Translations under genes and position numbers: made by a program | Part shown: positions 17,890 through 40,150 of the stretch, in pieces | Layout of the letters: each line of letters opens with the position of its first letter | How positions within the stretch are numbered: the first letter of the stretch is position 1 | Notes under the pieces: model-generated | Told to the model about the DNA's origin: nothing | The model's database searches: none | Seen by the model: only the letters and a program-made list of their open reading frames with translations | Assembly: GCA_904063045.1 (NCBI GenBank) | Contig: CAJFCJ010000026.1 | Location: 598,964-662,963, forward strand | DNA from: Dimorphilus gyrociliatus | Lineage: Eukaryota > Animalia > Annelida | Direction: 5' to 3' | Length of the DNA stretch: 64,000 nucleotides

Positions 17890-18700
17890 CCTTCAAAGGT
17901 GTTTTCAGAAGAGATGCAAAACTTTCGACAATTACGTAAAAGATACCGAAAAAACACTCGAAATAATCAAAACAACCAAATATCTTTTATTTAACGAACT
18001 TAATTTAAAAATTCAAAAATAGAAATATACAATAAAAAACATTGTCCAATTAATTAGTTCCAAAACTCAGCCTATAATTAAAACAACAACAACAACTCAC
18101 AACGTGGCTATCACGTGACTATTTTGTATAAATATAGGAGAAAATTGACGGTGGATTGTCAGTTACCAAATTGAGAAGACCCCGTCGTTTTCTCTGTCAG
18201 ATTTTTCTCTGATTTTATACATTTTTCAATAAGTTTTTTCAAGGATCTCGCAAAAATCAAAAGACGGAAAATTTCAATTTTCATTTTCTTAAACATTTGA
18301 AATGATTAACATGATTCTCTTCACTCCAAACACTTCACCAATCCCACTTGACACTCATTTTGGTAACTTAGGAAATGCAACATGGCCTAAAATTGCATGT
18401 TGCACCTTTTTTTAACTGAAAATAAAAGCCGATAAATAATTCGGCAAAAAGAACACGTCTCGCTTAAAGTTGGTCATGTTTTTTGCGGTGGAACTTTGTT
18501 TCGTGCTCTTTCACCGGAAGTGACGTAATGAATTTCCATGTAATTCGCCGAATGAACAACCTCAAAATTTTCTCTTTTTTTCCCGTAACTAGAAAAGTTT
18601 CTCTTTGTTCAACAAAAGTGAAATTTGCAGTATAAATCGTAAGGTCAGTATTATGGGAAAAAATGTGATTTTAGTACATTTTAGTACATATTTATATATG
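17890..18700. repeat. Repeated intergenic module, copy B (core 18042-18265)
   Basis: Core identical to copy A except for (aac)n length. Confidence 0.92.
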
Positions 18701-21249: not shown

Positions 21250-22400
21250 GGTGTTTTCAGAAGAGATGCAAAACTTTCGTCAATCATATTGTCCGATTAA
21301 TTAGTTCCAAAACTCAGCCTATAATTAAAACAACAACAACTCACAACGTGGCTATCACGTGACTATTTTGTATAAATATAGGAGAAAATTGACGGTGGAT
21401 TGTTAGTTACCAAATTGAGAAGACCCCGTCGTTTTCTCTGTCAGATTTTTCTCTGATTTTATACATTTTTCAATAAGTTTTTTCAAGGATCTCGCAAAAA
21501 TCAAAAGACAGAAAATGGAATTGTCATTTACTCAAACATTTGTCATTCCATAATTGATTTAGATGAAATGATTAACATGATTCTCTTCACTCCAAACACC
21601 TTACCAATACCACTTGACACTCATTTTGGTAACTTAGGAAATGCAACATGGCCTAAAATTGCATGTTGCACCCTTTTTTTAACTGAAAATAAAAGCCGAT
21701 AAATAATTCGGTAAAAAGAACACGTCTCGCTTAAAGTTGGTCATGTTTTTTACGATGGAACTTTGTTTCATGCTCTTTCACCGGAAGTGACGTCATGGAT
21801 TTACCATGTAATTCACCGAATTAACAAATTCACAAATTTCTCTTCTTACATCGACTACTAACAGAGTATCTCTTGTTCAATAAAAGTGAAATTTGCAGTA
21901 TTAGTCATAGGGTAAGTATTTAAGCAAAATATGTGGCCTAGTATATAAAAGCATTTGATTTCTTTTTAATAATTTTGGGAAAAGCCGGTAATGACATCAC
22001 TGAAAAACGTGAAATTAACGTGGAATATAGCATTCGAAAGTGGAGAGCGGTTTTAACAAAATGAAGAAATAGAACAAGTGAGAAAAAAAACATGTTTAAA
22101 TTGACGTTAACTGAAAATAAAAGCCGATAAATAATTCGGCAAAAAACACATGACTCGCTTAAAGTTGGTCATGTTTTTCACGGTGGAACTTTGTTGCGTG
22201 CTCTTTCACCGGAAGTGACGTCATGGATTTCCACGTAATTCACCAAGTTAATAACTTCAAAAATTTCTCATCTTATATTGGCAACTAACAAAGTAGCTTT
22301 TTTTAAAAAAGAAATGAAATTCGGGTTATAAATTGCATGTAAGTATTTAGAGAAAAATGAATGATTCTAGTAATGATATAAACAAAGTATTTTTTAGTAA
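21250..22400. repeat. Repeated intergenic module, copy C, with a second copy of the hairpin/ETS-CRE block (~22110-22260)
   Basis: Core 21289-21509 differs from copy A by 2 substitutions and (aac)n length; gccgataaataattcggc...ccggaagtgacgtca occurs twice. Confidence 0.92.
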
Positions 22401-22740
22401 ATTTTGGAAAAGCAGGAAATGACATCACTGAGAATAGGAAATACCCATCGATTATGACATTTGAAAATAACTAATGAAGAAATAGAAAAATTGGAGTGAA
22501 AAGACGTTTACAATGAGAAGCAGTATATCATGAAGAGCGAAAAGAAAGATAAAGGGAAGAAGAAAAGAAACAGAGAAGTAAGATTTTTATAAATGAAGTA
22601 AACGAGATTTAAGAATATAATTATTTTCAGTTTGTTTTCCTTTACATTTAAATAACACAATTGACGGCAATAATGAAGAATATCATGCTTTAAACCGAAA
22701 TTTATCAATAGATTCGTTCGAAACAATATATACGATATAC
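22400..22740 (+). pseudogene. Ig/FN3 gene family, 5' exons, copy truncated at the LTR insertion
   Basis: ggaaaagcaggaaatgacatcactgag; 53-bp intron 22578-22630. Confidence 0.65.
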
Positions 22741-22748
22741 TGTATATA

Positions 22749-22991
22749 TGTAGTCGATGGTACGTCGCCTAAATTTGGCAGCGAGCCAAATTACCTTACG
22801 TTTATATATACTTCGTTACGTCTATATGTTTAAAATCCATCATATTTCATTATCCTTTATCATTTCTATACGTCATTACTTATTATTACTGCTATATTTG
22901 CTAGTATATACCTTTAAACTTTAACGCGTTGTAGTAGTAAAGTCGGTGAAAATAGCCTTAACCTACGTCCGCTACTCATTCATCGACTACA
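22749..22991 (+). repeat. 5' LTR
   Basis: TGTAGTCGATG...CATCGACTACA perfect 11-bp terminal inverted repeat; direct repeat of 27550-27792. Confidence 0.96.
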
Positions 22992-23020
22992 GTAATAATA
23001 ATTAATTGTGAAATACTGAA

Positions 23021-24439
23021 ATGCCGAGAAAAAAACAAATCAAAACGGTCGCTAAATGCGCCAACCCTCCAAATCAATTGGAAAACCTCAATCAACAGGC
23101 CAACATGATCGACTCAGCTGCATTCGAACAGAAACTGGATGATCAGAGAAGAACGTTTGAAGATAAATTGGACGAACAATCAAGAAAAATCGAAGAATCG
23201 AACGCTCAGAATTTAGCGACGTTGGAAACAAAATTTGAGTCAAAATTGGAAGCAAACTTGAAACAAATCGTTCAAATAGTTAATTCCATTAAACTCAACT
23301 CTCACCAAGAAATACCGTTGAATTCTGGTTATGTTCCAGAATTGGAACATCTCTCAACGGTTGAAGAACAAAATGGCGGAAATTCGCAGGTTCGAAATAT
23401 TTCGAATCCAATACAGGAAGCCGAAAGTTCTTCGAAACAACTCGATCCTAGAATCGAAAACCTAAGGAATAAAAAGGTTACCCCATCAGAAATGTTCAGT
23501 GGTACCAATTTTCAAGATTTTCGTAGGAATGCCATCGTTCCATTATTAGAATCCGACATTTCCGAATTGGAAAAACGTCAGATTTTAAAGAGATGGACAA
23601 TGGAAGGGACAGTGTGCCACGAATATTATGATCTAGCAAATCGTAAATTCGATAGTGGGAATTTCGTACAATGCGTTCAGAAACTTGATTATGTTTACAC
23701 GGATATATCATCACAAGGATGCAACTTAGTGCAACAAATTCTAAACAAAAGGGATCCATTCCAACATCGGATCTTGTCCTATTGGGTCGAATTTAGGACT
23801 CTCCTTACGTTGCTAGATATGCCAAATTCCGAAAATCGATTGAAATTCGAAAGGCTTAGACAGTTTTCTAAGAGATTACCTCATGAATCCCAATCTCTAG
23901 TCACCCAGTATATAAATGAATATTATGACGATTTTGATTCAATCGTAATTAAGTTGGGACAATACATATCAAAAGTTGCCAATGGAATCGAAGATGGGAT
24001 ATACATTCCCGAGAATACAGAGACAAGAGTTGTAGCTTCAAGTATGACAAAGGACGATGGTAAATTTATGAGGCAGACCTCCCCCTCTTTTTCACCTAAC
24101 CGTAAGCCTTTGAAACATGTCCAGATACAAAACAAAGATAGGACTACACCTCCTAAAAATGATGGTAGATGCATGTGCGCTGAAAATCACATATGCCTGG
24201 CTTATTGTCCGATTTATATCAATCTTGATGTTAAAGGTAGGCAGCGAATGGTCCGACTGCTCCATAGACGTCAAAATTGTCTACGAAGTGGACACACAAG
24301 CGAAAAATGTTCATCAAGATATAGCTGTAAAAAATGTATCAAGCTCATCATACGACACTATATCATAAAGAGGCAACCACCCCAAAGGCAGTATCTGCTA
24401 TCAACTATAATTTATCAAAGAGAAAGCAAGAAAGAATGA
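23021..24439 (+). CDS. gag: BEL/Pao Gag (472-aa ORF, frameshifted near 24335)
   Basis: Coiled-coil N-terminus; Cys/His knuckles CMCAENHICLAYC, NCLRSGHTSEKC and CKKC; correcting one frameshift continues as QAHHTTLYH into the protease. Confidence 0.85.
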   Translation: MPRKKQIKTVAKCANPPNQLENLNQQANMIDSAAFEQKLDDQRRTFEDKLDEQSRKIEESNAQNLATLETKFESKLEANLKQIVQIVNSIKLNSHQEIPLNSGYVPELEHLSTVEEQNGGNSQVRNISNPIQEAESSSKQLDPRIENLRNKKVTPSEMFSGTNFQDFRRNAIVPLLESDISELEKRQILKRWTMEGTVCHEYYDLANRKFDSGNFVQCVQKLDYVYTDISSQGCNLVQQILNKRDPFQHRILSYWVEFRTLLTLLDMPNSENRLKFERLRQFSKRLPHESQSLVTQYINEYYDDFDSIVIKLGQYISKVANGIEDGIYIPENTETRVVASSMTKDDGKFMRQTSPSFSPNRKPLKHVQIQNKDRTTPPKNDGRCMCAENHICLAYCPIYINLDVKGRQRMVRLLHRRQNCLRSGHTSEKCSSRYSCKKCIKLIIRHYIIKRQPPQRQYLLSTIIYQRESKKE

Positions 24440-27400
24440 CCGTATAGGAGACAACTGTTCAAATTCCAGCGTCTGGTAAATCGACAAATCACAAAATTAC
24501 TGCTCTCCCTCGATACTGGAGCAGCAGTATCCCTGATCAGCCGATAATATTTAGAAAACATATCTTATGTCCCAATAGCTGAAAATTGTTGCCGAATAGA
24601 CATCTCCTATGTCAATAATGATTTCCAGACGATAACGACAGAAAAAGTCAAGGTCATATTCCCTAAATTGGGAAGTAAATACGATGTTGATGCCTATGTA
24701 GTAGATTCACTGTCCACTATACCAGAACAACCAGCGATAAAAATCAACTCAACCTACACAGAATGATCACTTCCAAGTGGCAGAATCGACTTATTAATAG
24801 GTCACAACTCAAAACTAGATAGACCTCATGCACATCTCAGTCCTATAAACCTGTATAAAACTAAAATTTTACCTTCGTGCAATATGCACTAGGATGGTTT
24901 AGAACCACTTCCCCCTATAATGAGACGCCTTATTCGGGACGCAACGTGAACATGATCTATGCAGAGACTCAGCCAAACGTCCATTACATAATCGAGTTAC
25001 CTGATGTGGACGATTTGGACGCAGATCCGCCATGCTCTATTAACGACGCCTGAGTAAGTGACATAATGGTAAACTATGTTCAGCCATCAAAAACTTATTG
25101 GACATTCCCTCTCCCTTTCAAATATGACCCGAACATACTATCTAACAATTACGTCATTGCAAAGAATCGATTTCTGGCTATTCGCCGTAAACCTATTTAT
25201 AACGAAGAATACAAAACAGACATTCAATCCCTGTTTGATAACAGTTATGCTCGTCGAGTGCCACACAAAGAAGTCAAAATTTATCTACCCCACCATGGAG
25301 TATCAAACCCAAATAAGAAGAAAATCAGAATAGTTTTCGATGGTGCCGCGAAATATAAGGGTTATTCTCTGAATGACACTCTCATGACGGGCCCTTCCTT
25401 ACTATGTAATCAAGCCCACCTCCTTACCTTGTGGCGAACTCAACCCTACTTCATTCTAGCAGACATCAAGCAAATGTTCATGAACATCCACGTGGACATT
25501 GAGCATCAACCCTATTTTGGTTTCCTGTACGAGGACCCAAAAAAAGAAAACAATATTCTATAGGCTGTCATGACTCGTCATATATTCGGCGCAGCTAGTT
25601 CTCCTTTTATTGCCTGCACAGCTCTTAACGCCACAATCAAACAAGTAGCCTCACTGAATAGCGAGGAGAAGGACATTATATTGAAATCCTTTTACATGGA
25701 TGATCTAATACTGGTTGGAGACAATGAAAAGCAATTGGAAAATCTGGCCTTCCGCCTTCACCAGGAGCTAGCAGCGAAAGGTTTACCCCTCACCAAGTAC
25801 TCTACAAATAATGAGTGGATAAGTACTCATTTAAAGTTAAACATCGAATTTATTCAACACCCTATCAAAGTTTTAGGCTTGTGCTACAAACCGCACCAAG
25901 ATCAAATCGAAGTCAACATACCCGACCGAGTACCTGAACACATTACTAAAAGGCTATTCTATTCGATTATTGCAAAAATATACGACATCATGGGTTTTAT
26001 AGAACCGATCAAGCTTCAAGTAAAAATTCTAATTTCCCAATTTCATGGCTTAAACTGGGACGATACAAGCCAAGATCAACAACATATTATTAAAATATTA
26101 AAAGATATCTCTGGTTCCTATTCAATCTCGAGATATATACCCTTTCCTATGCCAATGCCTCAGATATTGCTTATGGCGCAGCGGTATATGCGGTCCAAGC
26201 AGGAAAAGGCTACCTTTTGGCTTCTTCCTCCCGCCTTTTTTCCTTGCCGAGATCATCAATCCCGTGAGCAGAATTGACGGCATCGATTAGGGCAGCTAAC
26301 TATATCAAACCGTATAATACCTTATTCCCAGGTGTTCCCATCAATATATTCATAGACAGTAAAGTGGTTATCAGCTATTTAGAGAATGACGACCTAAAAC
26401 TTACTAAACATGTCCGCCATGCAGTAAAAGCAATACTGAAAACCAAATCAAAGGTTAAATGGCACCTAATTAGTTCAGAAGACAACCCAGCAGATTTCCT
26501 GACGAAATCAAGAAAGAGGATGAGAGAAAAATGGGACAAATTCCAGGAAATTCAAATCAAATGCGACGTGCAGAAAGTCACAATCAATATGTGCTCTGTA
26601 GACTCCACCTTTGAAATATTGGGAGATTGGAGGAAAATGAGACGGTCCCTGGCATGGATCTTAAGATTCGTGTCAAATACTCGAATCCAACCCTGTGACA
26701 GAATCAAGAACCATGAGTTGAATACTTGAGAATATCGCCATGGACTGTACCGGGCCCATATGTAAATCGACGGAGGGAGATAAAGTATACCTACTCGTCA
26801 TCTCCTGTTTAAGATCAAGAGCAGTGCAAATTTCACCAACAAAATCCCTATCAACGAAAGCACTTATGATTGAGTTCCAAATATTTATGGACAATTGGAG
26901 TTGGCCTAAATCAATAATCTCGGACTCGGCCCCAACCTTTAAGAAACTATACAAACTAATGAACGATCATTACAAAAAACAATCCAGAGTAAAACATATT
27001 ATCTGGAAATTCAATTCACCTTATTCAGCTCACAAAATGGGAGTTATTTGATAAAACCGATGCTCCTCACAACTGAGATAAAAAAGGACGCCTGCCTTGA
27101 GTGGGATATCATACGTCTCACGATTTCGGCTATTGAACATCTGTTAAATAACCGCCCCATAAGCTTTGGAATCAATGACTTAGGAGAACCCATGACAGTG
27201 TCACCGGTGGACTTCATAAAACTAAACAGAGTTCCAATAAAGGATGGAGAGTACGACCCCATCATTGTTACACGTGAACGCCAAATTCTGAACAACAAAT
27301 GTTGCACGGAATTATTTAATGGCGTCCACAAACACATAAAATGTTTCAAAGACAAATACAAGACAGATCTACATCCAGGAGACACTATCCTATATCTGGA

Positions 27401-27549
27401 TCAAAGATCGTCATATAAATTTAAATTGGGAATAATAACCCGTAAAATTACTGACCGAACCTTTGAAATGTACACTGGACACAGTAATATTGAGAGAGAT
27501 GTGAGATATTATTCCATTTCTACCCTCTCCTCTCCTCTTCCCCGGCCAG
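24440..27549 (+). pseudogene. pol: BEL/Pao pol (protease, RT, RNase H, integrase) with multiple stops and frameshifts
   Basis: LDTGAAVSLI; YLPHHG, RIVFDGAAK, ADIKQMF, FGAASSPF, YMDD; SSEDNPADFLTK; DCTGP, ISDSAPTF, WKFNSPYS. Confidence 0.93.
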
Positions 27550-27792
27550 TGTGGTCGATGGTACATCGACTAAATTTGGCAGCGAGCCAAATTACCTTAC
27601 GTTTATATATACTTCGTTACGTCTATATGTTTAAAATCCATCATATTTCATTATCCTTTATCATTTCTATACGTCATTACTTATTATTACTGCTATATTT
27701 GCTAGTATATACCTTTAAACTTTAACGCGTTGTAGTAGTAAAGTCGGTGAAAATAGCCTTAACATACGTCCGCTACTCATTCATCGACTACA
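27550..27792 (+). repeat. 3' LTR
   Basis: 239/243 identical to the 5' LTR; preceded by ctctcctctcctcttcccggccag. Confidence 0.96.
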
Positions 27793-27819
27793 TATATATA
27801 CATGTATATACGATAAAAA

Positions 27820-29170
27820 AGTACATTTGAAAAAAATCACATCACTGAGAATGGGAAAATAATCGTGGAATATAATATTCGAAAGTGGAAACGACTGAAA
27901 CGAATGAAGAAATATAAAAACTTGAGAAAAAAGGCGTTAAAAATGAACTGAAACTTTTCCTGAAAAGCGAGAAGATAGATAAAGGCAAGAAGAATAGAAA
28001 TACAGAAGTAAGATAAAGGAAACATGATTTAAAGAATATAATTCTTTTCAAATTGTTTTCGTTCATATTTAAAATACAATCGACGACAATGAAGATTATG
28101 GTTCAAACCAAAATTTAACAGCAGAAGCATTCAAAATAATACAAATGATAGATAGGAAGAGACTCTTCCGAAAATTATGTTTTTTCGAAGGACATGTTGA
28201 TAAAGGAAAAGAGAAGAATGAAGAAGATATTGCTAAACCAAAATTTACGAAAGAACAGAAGTGACTCTTCAGAAAGTTGTATTTTTTTTAGGGAGACATT
28301 GATATATGTGGGAAATGAAGAATGTAAAAGTGGAAATACTATCTTGAATAATGACAACCGTTAAATACTAATATGAATAAGTAGCTTTAATAACAGATTA
28401 GTTGTACTCTATATCCAAAACACGGAAGCTTGTCGCATAGACATATGTTGCTGTATAGCTTTGAATAAGCATGATGAAATTCTACTGAATTCCCTTTTGG
28501 AAGTTGGATATCCTTGAAAACATAAAAAATCCGAGTTAATTTAAAATGGAAATATATTAACAATGATATAACGAATGATGATAAAATACTTGTATTCAAT
28601 TTAACACTAGAATATTGGAGTAGAAGAGAAAAATCAAGCAGGAAAATATATAGTATATTTTTATACAAAGAAACCCTTCGAAAAAGTTATAAATAAATGC
28701 TCTCAACTCTTTCCTATCAATATAAAGTTGAAACATCTTCACCACCAAGAAACTTAAAAATAACTGATTGAAATCAATCATCTTGTAAACTTTGTTGGAA
28801 AGAACCATAGAATTGACGTCAAGTTAATCAATTAATTAAGTACTATATTGAAAAAAATGACGAAAATTACAACCAATAGTCGTTACAATAAATCATCAGT
28901 TTCTGGTAAAATTCAAGTTTAAATTACAACAATTGATAGGAATTCTAAAATAAAGTAGACAGCATCAACAACAGATGAATATTCAAATTTCTGTTTGGAA
29001 AATTATCGATAATAACAAATATTTGAAATCTTTTGATTATCAATTGGAAACAAAGTTGGATCTAACTCTTAAATTATCTTATTTGAAGATGACGAAATCT
29101 ATTTGATGGAAAAATTAGACGCTTTTATTAGCGATTATCGACAATCAAGAGAAAAAAAGCATTCCTTTTA
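27820..29170 (+). pseudogene. Ig/FN3 gene family, most complete relic (5' exons, Ig, FN3)
   Basis: RLVVLYIQNTEACRIDICCCIALNKHDE (Ig); TSSPPRNLKITD*NQSSCKLCWKEP...KYYIEKND (FN3); TKLDLTLKLSY segment shared with 40.6 kb. Confidence 0.8.
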
Positions 29171-30189: not shown

Positions 30190-31477
30190 TAAGATATTAA
30201 GTAATTTTAACACAGGAAAATGGAATTGCAGATTACAAAGAAAATAAAGATTTAAAGCAAACTGGACAAAGTCAAGGAAAAGAATGAAGGAAAAATGGCC
30301 CTTTTTTAAAGCAATCCAGACGGACACAAACGAAATCAAGGCAATCATACAACTTGTATTGGTTGATTTTTCACATAGCATACCAGGATTGTGACCAAAG
30401 ATGCGTCGTACAATGTCGTGAATCCTGGGATTCATGAACAATTGCCGTGCATCAAAACACTTAAATATATCGACAGCCGAATTGGACTCTGCTCAGCGAT
30501 ATAAATTTAAAATCGTACAAGGTTCTATGCCAATATAAAAACTAATAAAACCATACTCGCTAGCAAAGGAGGATGATGGTATCTATATGACATTAGGAAG
30601 GTCCGACAAGTTCAGAGAGACAAAGAAAGCTATCGTGGATGCACGTCACCCCATCGTCAAAAAGCTCATCAACTACATTCATTATGAATACAATTATACG
30701 TCTCTCAATGCAACCTGGATGAAACTAGCTGAATGCGAATATCCCATATACCAAAAGGCGCAAAATCTGCCTAACAACCATAAGAAAACGATATTACAGA
30801 TGGCCAATCTGCCAGATTCACGGACAGGAGACTTTATCTGCCCATTTCAAGATTGTGCAATGGTAACGACAAGGTATATCTCCTCGTCATTATATGTCTC
30901 GGCTCACGCGAGTAGTTGTACTACTCTCTACAACATCTCTATCGTCAGAAGTTCTGATGGTTGAGGTCCAACTGTTTCTAAATAAATGAGAATATCCTAA
31001 AACCATCATATCCGATTCAGCCTCACAGTTCAAAAAATTATATGGAGCAATGAATCAATATTATCAACAACAATCTAACGTGAAATACCTAACATGAAAG
31101 TTTAGTTCTCCATACTCTCCTCATAAACTGGGAGTTTTTGAGAGCCTTATAGGCATCATAAAGTTTCTACTCTCTATGTCAGTTAGGGACGGGAAATACG
31201 ACCCAGCCATAATATCGAAGGAACATAACCCCTATCTCTCAAGAAACTCTCTTCCCTTTTCCTCGGCCAGTGTAGTCGACGAAGGTAGCAACTAAACCTT
31301 GCCAACATGCCAAGTTTACATTATTTTACTAACCATATTACGCCTTTAAACTATAGTTAAGATTTTTATCATTCTATTCCGTTCACCTACTTAAAATTAT
31401 TCATAATAATAATTATAACAGTAATTATTGTCGAGTGTAAAACTACCTTAGCTAAGTATTTCTCTACGTCGACAACA
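30190..31477 (+). mobile_element. BEL/Pao 3' relic (integrase and 3' LTR 31271-31477)
   Basis: DARHPIVKKLINYIH, MANLPDSRTGD, ISDSASQFK; cctcggccag followed by LTR TGTAGTCGACG...CGTCGACAACA. Confidence 0.85.
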
Positions 31478-36400: not shown

Positions 36401-38750
36401 CATTGCGCTTCATCAGAGAATCGATCAAAATGTCCAAATACGTCGACAATCGAGTTAGACTTAACCAACGCTACCTATTCAAAATTGTCCAACTCTCTAT
36501 ATTCCAATACAAAAACTATTGGAACCATACTTGCTAGCGAAAGAGGACGACGGTACCTGAATTACGTTAGGAAGGTCCGATAAACTAAGAGAGAAAAAGA
36601 AAGCGATCATACAAACGGCAAACCCACCTAACTCTTGAACAGAAGCATTTAACAGTCCGTTCCAAGACTGTGCTGTAGATCTAACGCGCTGTACAGATAT
36701 CGCCCACAAAATCTCTAACACCGGACTCTATGATGGTAGAATTCCAACTCTTTTCGGATAGGTGAGGAATGCCAGAGTCAATTATATCCGATTCTGCGCC
36801 GACCTTCCGAAAATTATACCGAACAATAGAGAAACATTCCCAAGAACAATCTAATGTAAAACACCTGGAAGTTTAGTTCACCGTACTCCTCTTACAAGAT
36901 GGAAGAGCTGTAGAGAGACTCATAGGACTCATCAAAGTCATGTTTTGTCTACATCAAAATTAAAGAAGAAACGCGCTTCATCATAGGAAGTTATACGCCT
37001 CCACAAAAGGACGAAATGGTGGAAGGACAAATATAAGATCCCCTTGCACACCGACGACTTGGCTCTTTACTTAGACCAACAAGCAGTTCGCAAATTTAAG
37101 CTGGGATACATTTCGAGACAGATATCTGATCGTACGTATGAGATCTACTCAGGACACAATCAAACAGAAAGAGATGCCAGAGTCATGAGATTCATAGAAC
37201 CTGTAAAACTACAGGCCAAAATCTTTATCTCCGAATTCCATGGTCTGAACTGGGACGACACATGCAAAAACGAAATTCACATCAACAAGATATTGAAGGA
37301 TATATCCAATCCCTATTCAATTATAAGACAGATTCCATCTCCTGATGCCATCCATATGTTCGCCGATGCGTCGGACATAGCTTATGGGGCAGCTGTATAC
37401 GCAGTTAGTGAAGGTAAAGGCTACTTGCTGGCATCTTCTTCTCGTCTCTTTTCCTTATCAATCCCGCGAGTAGAATTGACGGTAGCTATAAGAGCCGCGA
37501 ATTTATCAAATCATACAGTACCATTTTCCCAGTTGTATTAAGATTCAAGTCCAATGCTCAATCTCCACCTACTGATAGAATCAAGGACAACGAAGTGAGT
37601 AATAGAGAACTCGATGAACCCCAACGATACCAATAAATAAGTTTCTAGAACCTTATTCACTGTTTGAAGAGGAAGACGGAACCTATGTCATCATGGGAAG
37701 ATCAAACGAATCACAGCGAACAAAAAAGATCACAGTCGACGCCTGCCATCCTATTCTTACTAAGCTGATTAACCATATATTAAACAACTGGAACCATCTC
37801 GATGAACCGTCGCCCTATAAGCTTCGGGATAGAGATTTCTTTTTATCACAGTGAAAAATGGGGGAGTGGGTGAAGTGATTTGAGAAATAAGCTCAATAGC
37901 TGATAGCTTTATCTTTTCTACCTAGGGTTATTATCACTCCAACTTTTTATGGATTACAGTCTCTCATCCGACAGGAAGAGAACAATTTTCAGATTTTTTT
38001 TAAATGTTTTGAGACAAATCAGATTATGAAAACCAGGCAATTGGTCTCATCAAGAGGAATGTTCTTTCACCTCAGATATTTGGTCACGTGCCACTTTTTA
38101 ACTCCTCTAAATTTTTGTAGGAAGTCTAAAGGTGCCAAGTCTGGGGCCAATTTTGTCTTCTTACGAAGATGCAATCATACTTTTTGTATTGTAGCCAATC
38201 AGCATCCACATCCTTTATCAACCTTTCAAATAGTCTCTTGAGCAATATCCAATATTTTTGCTATAGTGACGATTAAGGCTATTATAGCCTTGTCAGCTGT
38301 GCACAACAATACCTGGAATATCTGAATAATCTCAACACTTTCTTCTACGACTCTGAAAAAGGTAATCGATGTTAAATTGGGTTAGACTGTTATTAACAAT
38401 ATAAATAAAGTTGTTCAAGTATTTCTTAAACGTTATTGTCAAATCTTTTTTGTATTAAAATATTCTAGCAATCTAGGGGAACCTCTATTAACGATCCATG
38501 TATAACTTCAAGCTGGGATATATCACCTATAAAGTCACAGAACGTAATTTGGAAATTCATACCGGGCACAGCAAAATTGAGAAAGACGCAAGAGATATAA
38601 TCCCTTACTCACCGAATGAGCCTCTTTCCGTTCCTCTTCCCTCGGCCAGTGTAGTCGATGAACAACGTGCCAAACTAATCTACCATTATCACTATAAACG
38701 TTACGTGCCCATATTTAAAGCCTATGGTATCATTCTTTTTCTCTGCATTT
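33487..38750 (+). mobile_element. Decayed BEL/Pao element with nested insertions and rearrangements
   Basis: Matching LTR relics at 33487-~33710 and 38650-~38750 (tgtagtcgatgaac...gtgccaaactaatctacc); gag, RT (MTRHIFGATSSP, FYMDN), RNase H (HMFADASDIAYGAAVY) and integrase pieces; extra LTR and gag piece at 35153-35520. Confidence 0.8.
35590..35860 (+). mobile_element. Tc1 transposase catalytic-domain relic nested in the Pao element
   Basis: MDSEQYINILK...IFHQDGARCHTSK...PAQSPDLNIIENLWAVLKKRV. Confidence 0.85.
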
Positions 38751-39359: not shown

Positions 39360-40150
39360 TTCAGTTTTCAGAAGAGATGCAATAACCTCAAAAAAAGACT
39401 GAAATAATTAAAACAACCATATATCTCTTCTATTTAACGAATTTTGGTGTAAAAACTCAAAAAGACCTGAAGAAATATAGAATAAAAAACGTTGTCCAAT
39501 TAATTAGTTCCAAAACTCAGCCTATAATTAAAACAACAACAACAACAACTCACAACGTGGCTATCACGTGACTATTTTGTATAAATATAGGAGAAAATTG
39601 ACGGTGGATTGTCAGTTACCAAATTGAGAAGACCCCGTCGTTTTCTCTGTCAGATTTTTCTCTGATTTTATACGTTTTTCAATAAGTTTTTTCAAGGATC
39701 TCGCAAAAATCAAAAGACGGAAAATTTCAATTTTCATTTTCTTAAACATTTGAAATGATTAACATGATTCTCTTCACTCCAAACACTTCACCAATCCCAC
39801 TTGACACTCATTTTGGTAACTTAGGAAATGCAACATGGCCTAAAATTGCATGTTGCACCTTTTTTTAACTGAAAATAAAAGCCGATAAATAATTCGGCAA
39901 AAAAAACATGACTCGCTTAAAGTTGGTCATGTTTTTTACGGTGCAACTTTGTTGCGTTCACTTTCACCGGAAGTGACGTCATGGATTTCCATGTAATTCA
40001 CCGAATTAACAAATTCACAAATTTCTCTTCTTACATCGACAACTAACAGAGTATCTCTTTGTTTGATAAAAGTGAAATTTGCAGTATTAGTCATAGGGTA
40101 AGTATTTAAGCAAAATGTGTGGCCTAGCATATAAAAGCATTTGGTTTCTT
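39360..40150. repeat. Repeated intergenic module, copy D (core 39492-39718)
   Basis: Core differs from copy A by 1 substitution and (aac)n length. Confidence 0.92.

Follow-up and report, generated by a model that had tools for sequence, protein, structure and literature searches.

Anatomy of the element

The window analyzed here is a 64-kb stretch of DNA (C26:598964-662963 of a 78-Mb assembly), and all positions below follow its numbering unless another contig is named. It contains an LTR retrotransposon of 5,044 bp, in which both LTRs are 243 nt long and 98% identical, with four differences. The 5′ LTR lies on the plus strand at 22749..22991, ends in CTACA, and is repeated directly by the 3′ LTR (27550..27792, plus strand). 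The 5′ LTR is delimited by perfect terminal inverted repeats of 11 bp (22749-22759, TGTAGTCGATG, and 22981-22991, CATCGACTACA), and the LTR terminus of the lineage is TGTAGTCGA.... The whole element is flanked by a target-site duplication, TATA(TA), at 22743..22748 (strand not applicable), with its partner at 27793-27798.

Within the 5′ LTR, a TATA-like box (22823..22836, plus strand) stands out as a conserved block in the alignment of the LTR subfamilies. A leader of 29 nt (22992..23020, plus strand), which contains no TGG, separates the LTR from the gag ATG. It is followed by a gag ORF of 472 aa (23021..24439, plus strand), for which no match was found in Pfam. Gag is intact, whereas the pol behind it is broken in every frame. 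This pol (24440..27549, plus strand) is spread over three frames, with the reverse transcriptase (RT) and PF05380 in 25564-26274, a weak RNase H-like match at 26268-26726, and a weak match to the integrase core at 26722-27048. A pyrimidine-rich tract ending in GGCCAG occupies 27520..27549 (plus strand), the place where a polypurine tract is expected. The Rfam scan of 22600-27900 returned no match.

Other traits of the LTRs and of their insertion sites were observed. The 11-bp inverted repeats are unusually long, and at the RNA level they could let the end of U5 pair with the start of U3, which would unite both priming sites. U3 contains a perfect NFI-type palindrome, TTGGC(N5)GCCAA, at 22775-22789 and 27576-27590; since it is retained in diverged LTR subfamilies with different spacers, it is likely an enhancer of the LTR promoter. 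Furthermore, the insertions lie in runs of (TA)n and are flanked by TATA or TATATA duplications (window copy and loci L005-L008, L012, L014, and L015), which suggests a target preference for TA repeats.

Assignment to BEL/Pao

The Pfam scan of the window pol identified RVT_1 followed by PF05380, which scored 29.2 bits against a cut-off of 22.3; further downstream it gave weak matches to RVT_3 and rve. In the sister copy on contig C74, PF05380 reached 46.4 bits, with RVT_1 upstream and a weak rve match downstream. Because PF05380 is Pao-specific and lies above the cut-off and downstream of the RT, the element family belongs, on the basis of its protein domains, to BEL/Pao. The same assignment had been made in an earlier reading of the window from its letters and open reading frames (hereafter, the sequence-only reading), and it is borne out by PF05380 in both copies.

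The LTRs are those of a BEL/Pao element as well, having TGTAG...CTACA ends and a duplication of TATA or TATATA, within the 4-6 bp of the superfamily. Indeed, the lineage shares with the canonical Belpaoviridae (Pao, BEL, Tas, Sinbad, and Suzu) the TGT...ACA ends of the LTRs, a short target-site duplication, a metazoan host, and a gag followed by a pol with RT, PF05380 region, and integrase core. It is compact, at 4.3-5 kb, a size within the 4.2-10 kb of that family (PMC8742986). Every copy seen is decayed, with a broken pol, and a metagenome scan for relatives found none.

The difference from the canonical members lies in two cis features. The Belpaoviridae carry an 18-nt primer-binding site (PBS) for tRNA-Arg or tRNA-Gly, and upstream of the 3′ LTR they have a polypurine tract of ~10 nt; their ICTV profile describes tRNA-primed replication (PMC8742986). 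The lineage has neither feature: the six leaders that we recovered are all without TGG, their junction sequence varies by subfamily, and pyrimidines stand where the purines would be.

The LTR-leader complement in the window copy

A candidate self-complementary PBS straddles the LTR-leader boundary, with its first 2 nt in the 5′ LTR and the other 15 nt in the leader (22990..23006, plus strand; core 22990-23001). Its partner is a candidate self-primer segment inside the LTR (22875..22891, plus strand), the core of which (22880-22891) is an exact complement of the junction, and 22875-22879 gives four more pairs beyond one mismatch. Overall, the pairing of 22875-22891 with 22990-23006 covers 17 positions with one mismatch. 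In the 64-kb window, TTATTATTACTG occurs only at 22880-22891 and 27681-27692, that is, once in each LTR on the plus strand, and at 22990-23001 on the minus strand; the chance expectation for such matches in the window is 0.01.

These results agree with the sequence-only reading, which had described a leader devoid of a TGG-type PBS and an exact 12-nt reverse complement between 22990-23001 and 22880-22891. That reading had also cautioned that the match is AT-rich and low in complexity, and the caution is justified, since 20 of 5,000 dinucleotide-preserving shuffles of the LTR yielded a complement of at least 12 nt to the junction window and (TA)n flanks yield chance complements of up to 12 nt. 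The match in a single copy is only moderately unlikely, and the case rests on the other copies.

Conservation of the complement across copies

Searching the genome by LTR, by leader plus gag, and by the gag start motif, we recovered six 5′ LTR-leader junctions belonging to four sequence types. The five junctions besides that of the window copy (on contigs C74, C231, C5, C12, and C52) have 68-82% identity. Type A comprises the window, C74, and C231 copies (~82% identity between copies), and its duplex is of 12-13 bp when exact and of 17 bp with one mismatch. Type B′ (C5, 72% identity to the window copy) has 14 bp with one mismatch, and type B (C12, 68%) has 13/13 bp. Type C (C52, ~70%; the leader is also found on C155 behind a truncated LTR) has 14/14 bp, in a sequence unrelated to that of type A. 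No TGG was found in the leaders of the six junctions.

The position of the complement is maintained among the types. In each of them, the LTR side of the best (longest or top-scoring) LTR-junction complement is 94-117 nt away from the LTR end and, counting from the first nucleotide of the leader, the junction side falls within −3 to +15; across the four sequence types, the duplex starts at −3 to +2 of the LTR end. Dinucleotide shuffles equaled the observed match in 18/5,000 cases for the C74 copy of type A, in 4/5,000 for type B, and in 0/5,000 for type C; the exact match of type B′ was not significant against shuffles. The duplexes have imperfections: type B′ carries a mismatch, and the type A extension keeps one conserved mismatch.

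Among the five alignable sequences, 92% of the cells of a 15-bp core are paired, and two core pairs are changed on both sides among types A, B, and B′ (U-A to A-U in one case, C-G versus U-A in the other). The paired cells outdo all but 10 of 500 shuffles, a modest result obtained on five alignable sequences. Controls with slid partners paired at 14-64%, and slides of 3 columns gave 54-64%, a high value due to the 3-nt periodicity of the A+T-rich sequence. As a further control, the ordinary flanks of 17 LTR copies gave only (TA)n-type complements of 10-12 nt, located at the TATA box of the LTR, and they matched the primer segment in no case, except for one 10-mer beside it.

In a type-C-like copy near 690 kb (L047; G000:C26:686000-695999, minus strand, locus ~4750), a deletion of ~16 nt in the leader removes the whole candidate PBS, and the LTR segment is retained. 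The pol of this copy has 11 stops, and the deletion is thus probably post-insertional decay. For the 31271- and 33487-type LTRs, no 5′ junction survives in the DNA reached, where only 3′, solo, or truncated LTRs were found; three additional gag fragments are 5′-truncated.

The comparison answers several points raised from the window alone. Copies with a TGG-type PBS, which would indicate a site deleted from the window copy, were not seen, and five further leaders are without TGG. The complement, suggested as a trait to be sought in sister subfamilies, is present in every subfamily with a surviving 5′ junction, with a differing sequence. The compensatory changes proposed as a check consist of the two double-sided changes among types A, B, and B′, together with the unrelated 14/14 duplex of type C.

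Predicted RNA folds and transcript start

Folding of the LTR-leader RNA had also been proposed in the sequence-only reading. The RNAs of the six copies were folded from the primer segment through the AUG, and in 6/6 the predicted minimum-energy structure has the junction duplex as its closing helix, with fold z values of −3.4 for type A and −2.9 for type C. The folds of types A and C also contain a predicted 9-bp stem (in the window copy 22942..22987, plus strand; 22942-22950 with 22979-22987) immediately inside the primer/PBS duplex, in a position like that of a U5-IR stem-loop. Its cells are 84% paired, none of its pairs changes on both sides, and in types B and B′ it is weak.

The primer segment lies 39-52 nt downstream of the conserved TATA-like box. 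The data suggest that a TATA-directed start would fall at ~22849-22875, upstream of the complement rather than exactly at 22880. With a start upstream of 22880, the segment would still be within the transcript; it appears to be transcribed, inside R, but it probably does not constitute the first nucleotides of the RNA. An internal primer segment would be compatible with self-priming because strong-stop DNA can move to the 3′ R, where the upstream part is copied. The motif TTCATTA is conserved at 22846-22852. A TCATTA resembling an initiator, which borders the complement (22873-22878), was considered as support and dropped, as it is present in the window copy only; the TATA-like box points to a start 15-35 nt farther 5′.

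Probable self-priming and alternative explanations of the pairing

We consider Tf1-like self-priming the best explanation for this decayed lineage, with a probability of roughly 0.6; in its active period, minus-strand DNA synthesis would have begun on the RNA of the element itself instead of a host tRNA. It fits the data because the duplex always abuts the U5 boundary, no tRNA-type site is present, and the paired sequences turn over. According to this mechanism, a 12-17 nt segment of the transcribed LTR, located in its 5′ part (22875-22891 in the window copy), would fold back onto the site at the LTR/leader boundary (22990-23006), closing a domain of ~100 nt. The RNase H of the element would then cleave the RNA on the 3′ side of this paired segment, and the freed 3′ end would be extended through U5 and R. 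If the primer were retained and copied by the plus strand, the PBS would be rewritten from the LTR in each cycle. Such rewriting would account for the perfect matches of 13-14 bp in LTRs that are otherwise 20-30% diverged, and also for the tolerated overlap with the last 2-3 nt of the LTR. In Tf1, the primer is reportedly retained. The self-priming interpretation first advanced from the window copy is, coherently, supported by the comparative sequence evidence, from which the mechanism itself is inferred.

Among the alternatives, the one that best survives is that selection has kept the LTR-leader pairing as an RNA structure for some other function (packaging, dimerization, circularization of the genome, or control of gag translation), the primer being something else. 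We regard this as unlikely, though it is the strongest of the competitors. The duplex is suited to such a role, as it closes a stable 5′ domain shortly before the gag AUG, which lies 12-20 nt further downstream, and covariation indicates pairing rather than priming. The lineage is anomalous at its 3′ end as well, having no polypurine tract, which makes its replication signals as a whole hard to interpret. However, a structure of this kind leaves no alternative primer site, given that no leader contains a TGG. Furthermore, the duplex is always found at −3 to +2 of the LTR end, exactly where the 3′ end of a primer must sit, and a stem for packaging or translation would have no cause to follow this boundary through the sequence turnover and the leader indel of type C.

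Chance complementarity in A+T-rich, low-complexity sequence, combined with the shared descent of the copies, is improbable in our judgment. It draws on the window copy, where the match is unlikely only at the ~0.4% level, on the 10-12 nt complements produced by (TA)n flanks, on the 54-64% pairing of partners slid by 3 nt, and on the three type-A copies, which have a common duplex through descent. On the other hand, chance would have to place three different duplexes (types A, B, and C) at one LTR position and at the junction, with shuffles matching type C in 0/5,000 and type B in 4/5,000 cases, and to change two positions on both strands; moreover, the control flanks miss the LTR segment, bar the one adjacent 10-mer.

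Least probable of the three is priming by a host tRNA, by an internal tRNA segment in the style of the copia half-tRNA, or by an A+T-rich tRNA of mitochondrial type, or else the descent of all copies from defective masters that had lost their PBS: the ICTV profile has BEL/Pao elements primed by tRNA-Gly or tRNA-Arg (PMC8742986) and all our copies are defective, but each junction type matches its own LTR, so that three tRNA segments would need to coincide with the LTR, the leaders lack TGG, the tRNA-Cys and tRNA-Glu genes of the window (the two tRNA species compared) complement the leaders by at most 7 nt, and subfamilies 18-32% diverged, with several copies each, point to repeated successful transposition with this junction.

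The 3′ end of the element

In 10/10 of the 3′ LTRs examined, representing four LTR subfamilies, the coding strand just ahead of the LTR is rich in pyrimidines, not purines, and this stretch ends in GGCCAG. In the window, tracts ending in (C/T)(C/G)GGCCAG are located at 27520-27549, 31241-31270, 38620-38649, and 1378-1407. The tract seems to lie inside the C-terminal reading frame of pol. Its opposite strand resembles a TGG-type site followed by a purine run. An opposite polarity of the element was considered and rejected, as RT, PF05380, and gag are all on the plus strand. The tract was also evaluated as a copy of a tRNA 3′ end and rejected: neither the acceptor nor the T-arm that it would imply looks like that of a tRNA, and the similarity is confined to TTCCCGG, a motif common in T-arms.

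The folds include a possible stem spanning the U3 border, for which covariation gives no support. A broader form of the self-priming reading is that both strands are primed by the RNA of the element through structure-directed cleavage, with the LTR/leader duplex serving the minus strand and the U3-border fold the plus strand, as a surviving or re-invented hairpin priming of the type proposed as ancestral. We consider this broader form a speculative and improbable extension.

Comparison with known self-priming elements

To our knowledge, the only elements in which self-priming has been demonstrated are Ty3/gypsy elements of the Tf1 type, and it has been predicted for a single lineage of Ty1/copia. 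In Tf1, self-primed reverse transcription is established (PMC4600332). The published working rule for predicting self-priming in plant elements, which asks for a complement of 10 bp or more beginning 0-5 bp after the 5′ LTR (PMC6317226), applies to the lineage studied here as well. The complement of at least 10-11 nt that characterizes the Tf1 class is found in all four types, as 12-14 bp exact or as 14-17 bp with one mismatch.

The Tf1/sushi and Tcn1 group of Ty3/gypsy chromoviruses (Tf1, Tf2, Tj1, and sushi) resembles the lineage in several respects. Both are without a tRNA PBS, and in both the site beside the 5′ LTR finds its complement early in the LTR transcript, over 11 nt in Tf1 and 12-14 nt in the lineage (PMC4600332, PMC6317226). 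In addition, the gag start follows closely behind, and the stem predicted beside the duplex in types A and C may correspond to the U5-IR stem-loop. There are also differences. The pol of the lineage is not of the chromovirus type and carries the Pao-specific PF05380, a domain that assigns it to another superfamily. The Tf1 primer is the very 5′ end of the RNA, whereas the paired segment of the lineage probably is not. Moreover, the predicted duplex of the lineage takes in the last 0-3 nt of the LTR, and the 3′ LTR has no polypurine tract in front of it.

A second term of comparison is the TAR lineage (Houba and Osr-1) of plant Ty1/copia elements, for which the prediction of self-priming came purely from a complement of 10 bp or more to the inside of the LTR, beginning 0-5 bp past the 5′ LTR (PMC6317226). 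That evidence is equal in kind and level to the evidence for the BEL/Pao lineage. The TAR elements have the integrase before the RT, as plant Ty1/copia elements, and are unrelated to BEL/Pao.

The lineage would thus represent a Tf1-like mechanism outside the Tf1 clade, in elements that are BEL/Pao by their proteins and lack two of the cis features described for that superfamily. Self-priming is a known mechanism, and what would be new is its occurrence in BEL/Pao. The sequence-only reading knew of no such case, and we found no report of self-priming in Pao or Belpaoviridae elements in the open-access full-text literature; a report in a subscription journal is possible. Two large BEL/Pao surveys do not discuss priming sites.

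If the self-priming reading is true, all three LTR-retrotransposon superfamilies include tRNA-independent members. This would bear on whether hairpin priming, which has been proposed as ancestral to LTR retroelements (PMC3601003), is indeed ancestral or has arisen repeatedly. Furthermore, annotation pipelines that require a tRNA site and a polypurine tract would miss or misclassify lineages of this kind.

Other features of the window

The tRNA genes mentioned above form a duplicated pair, tRNA-Cys(GCA) and tRNA-Glu(TTC), at 57945-58918. The anticodon arm of the tRNA-Cys has TCGACTGCAG, similar in the same sense to the LTR end TCGACTACAG; the similarity is probably fortuitous.

Two stretches of 300 nt, at 18082-18381 and 39535-39834, are 100% identical and lie 21.4 kb apart, bracketing a cluster of BEL/Pao fragments. 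A third copy, with 74% identity, is located at 21326, and all belong to a repeat array in the host region.
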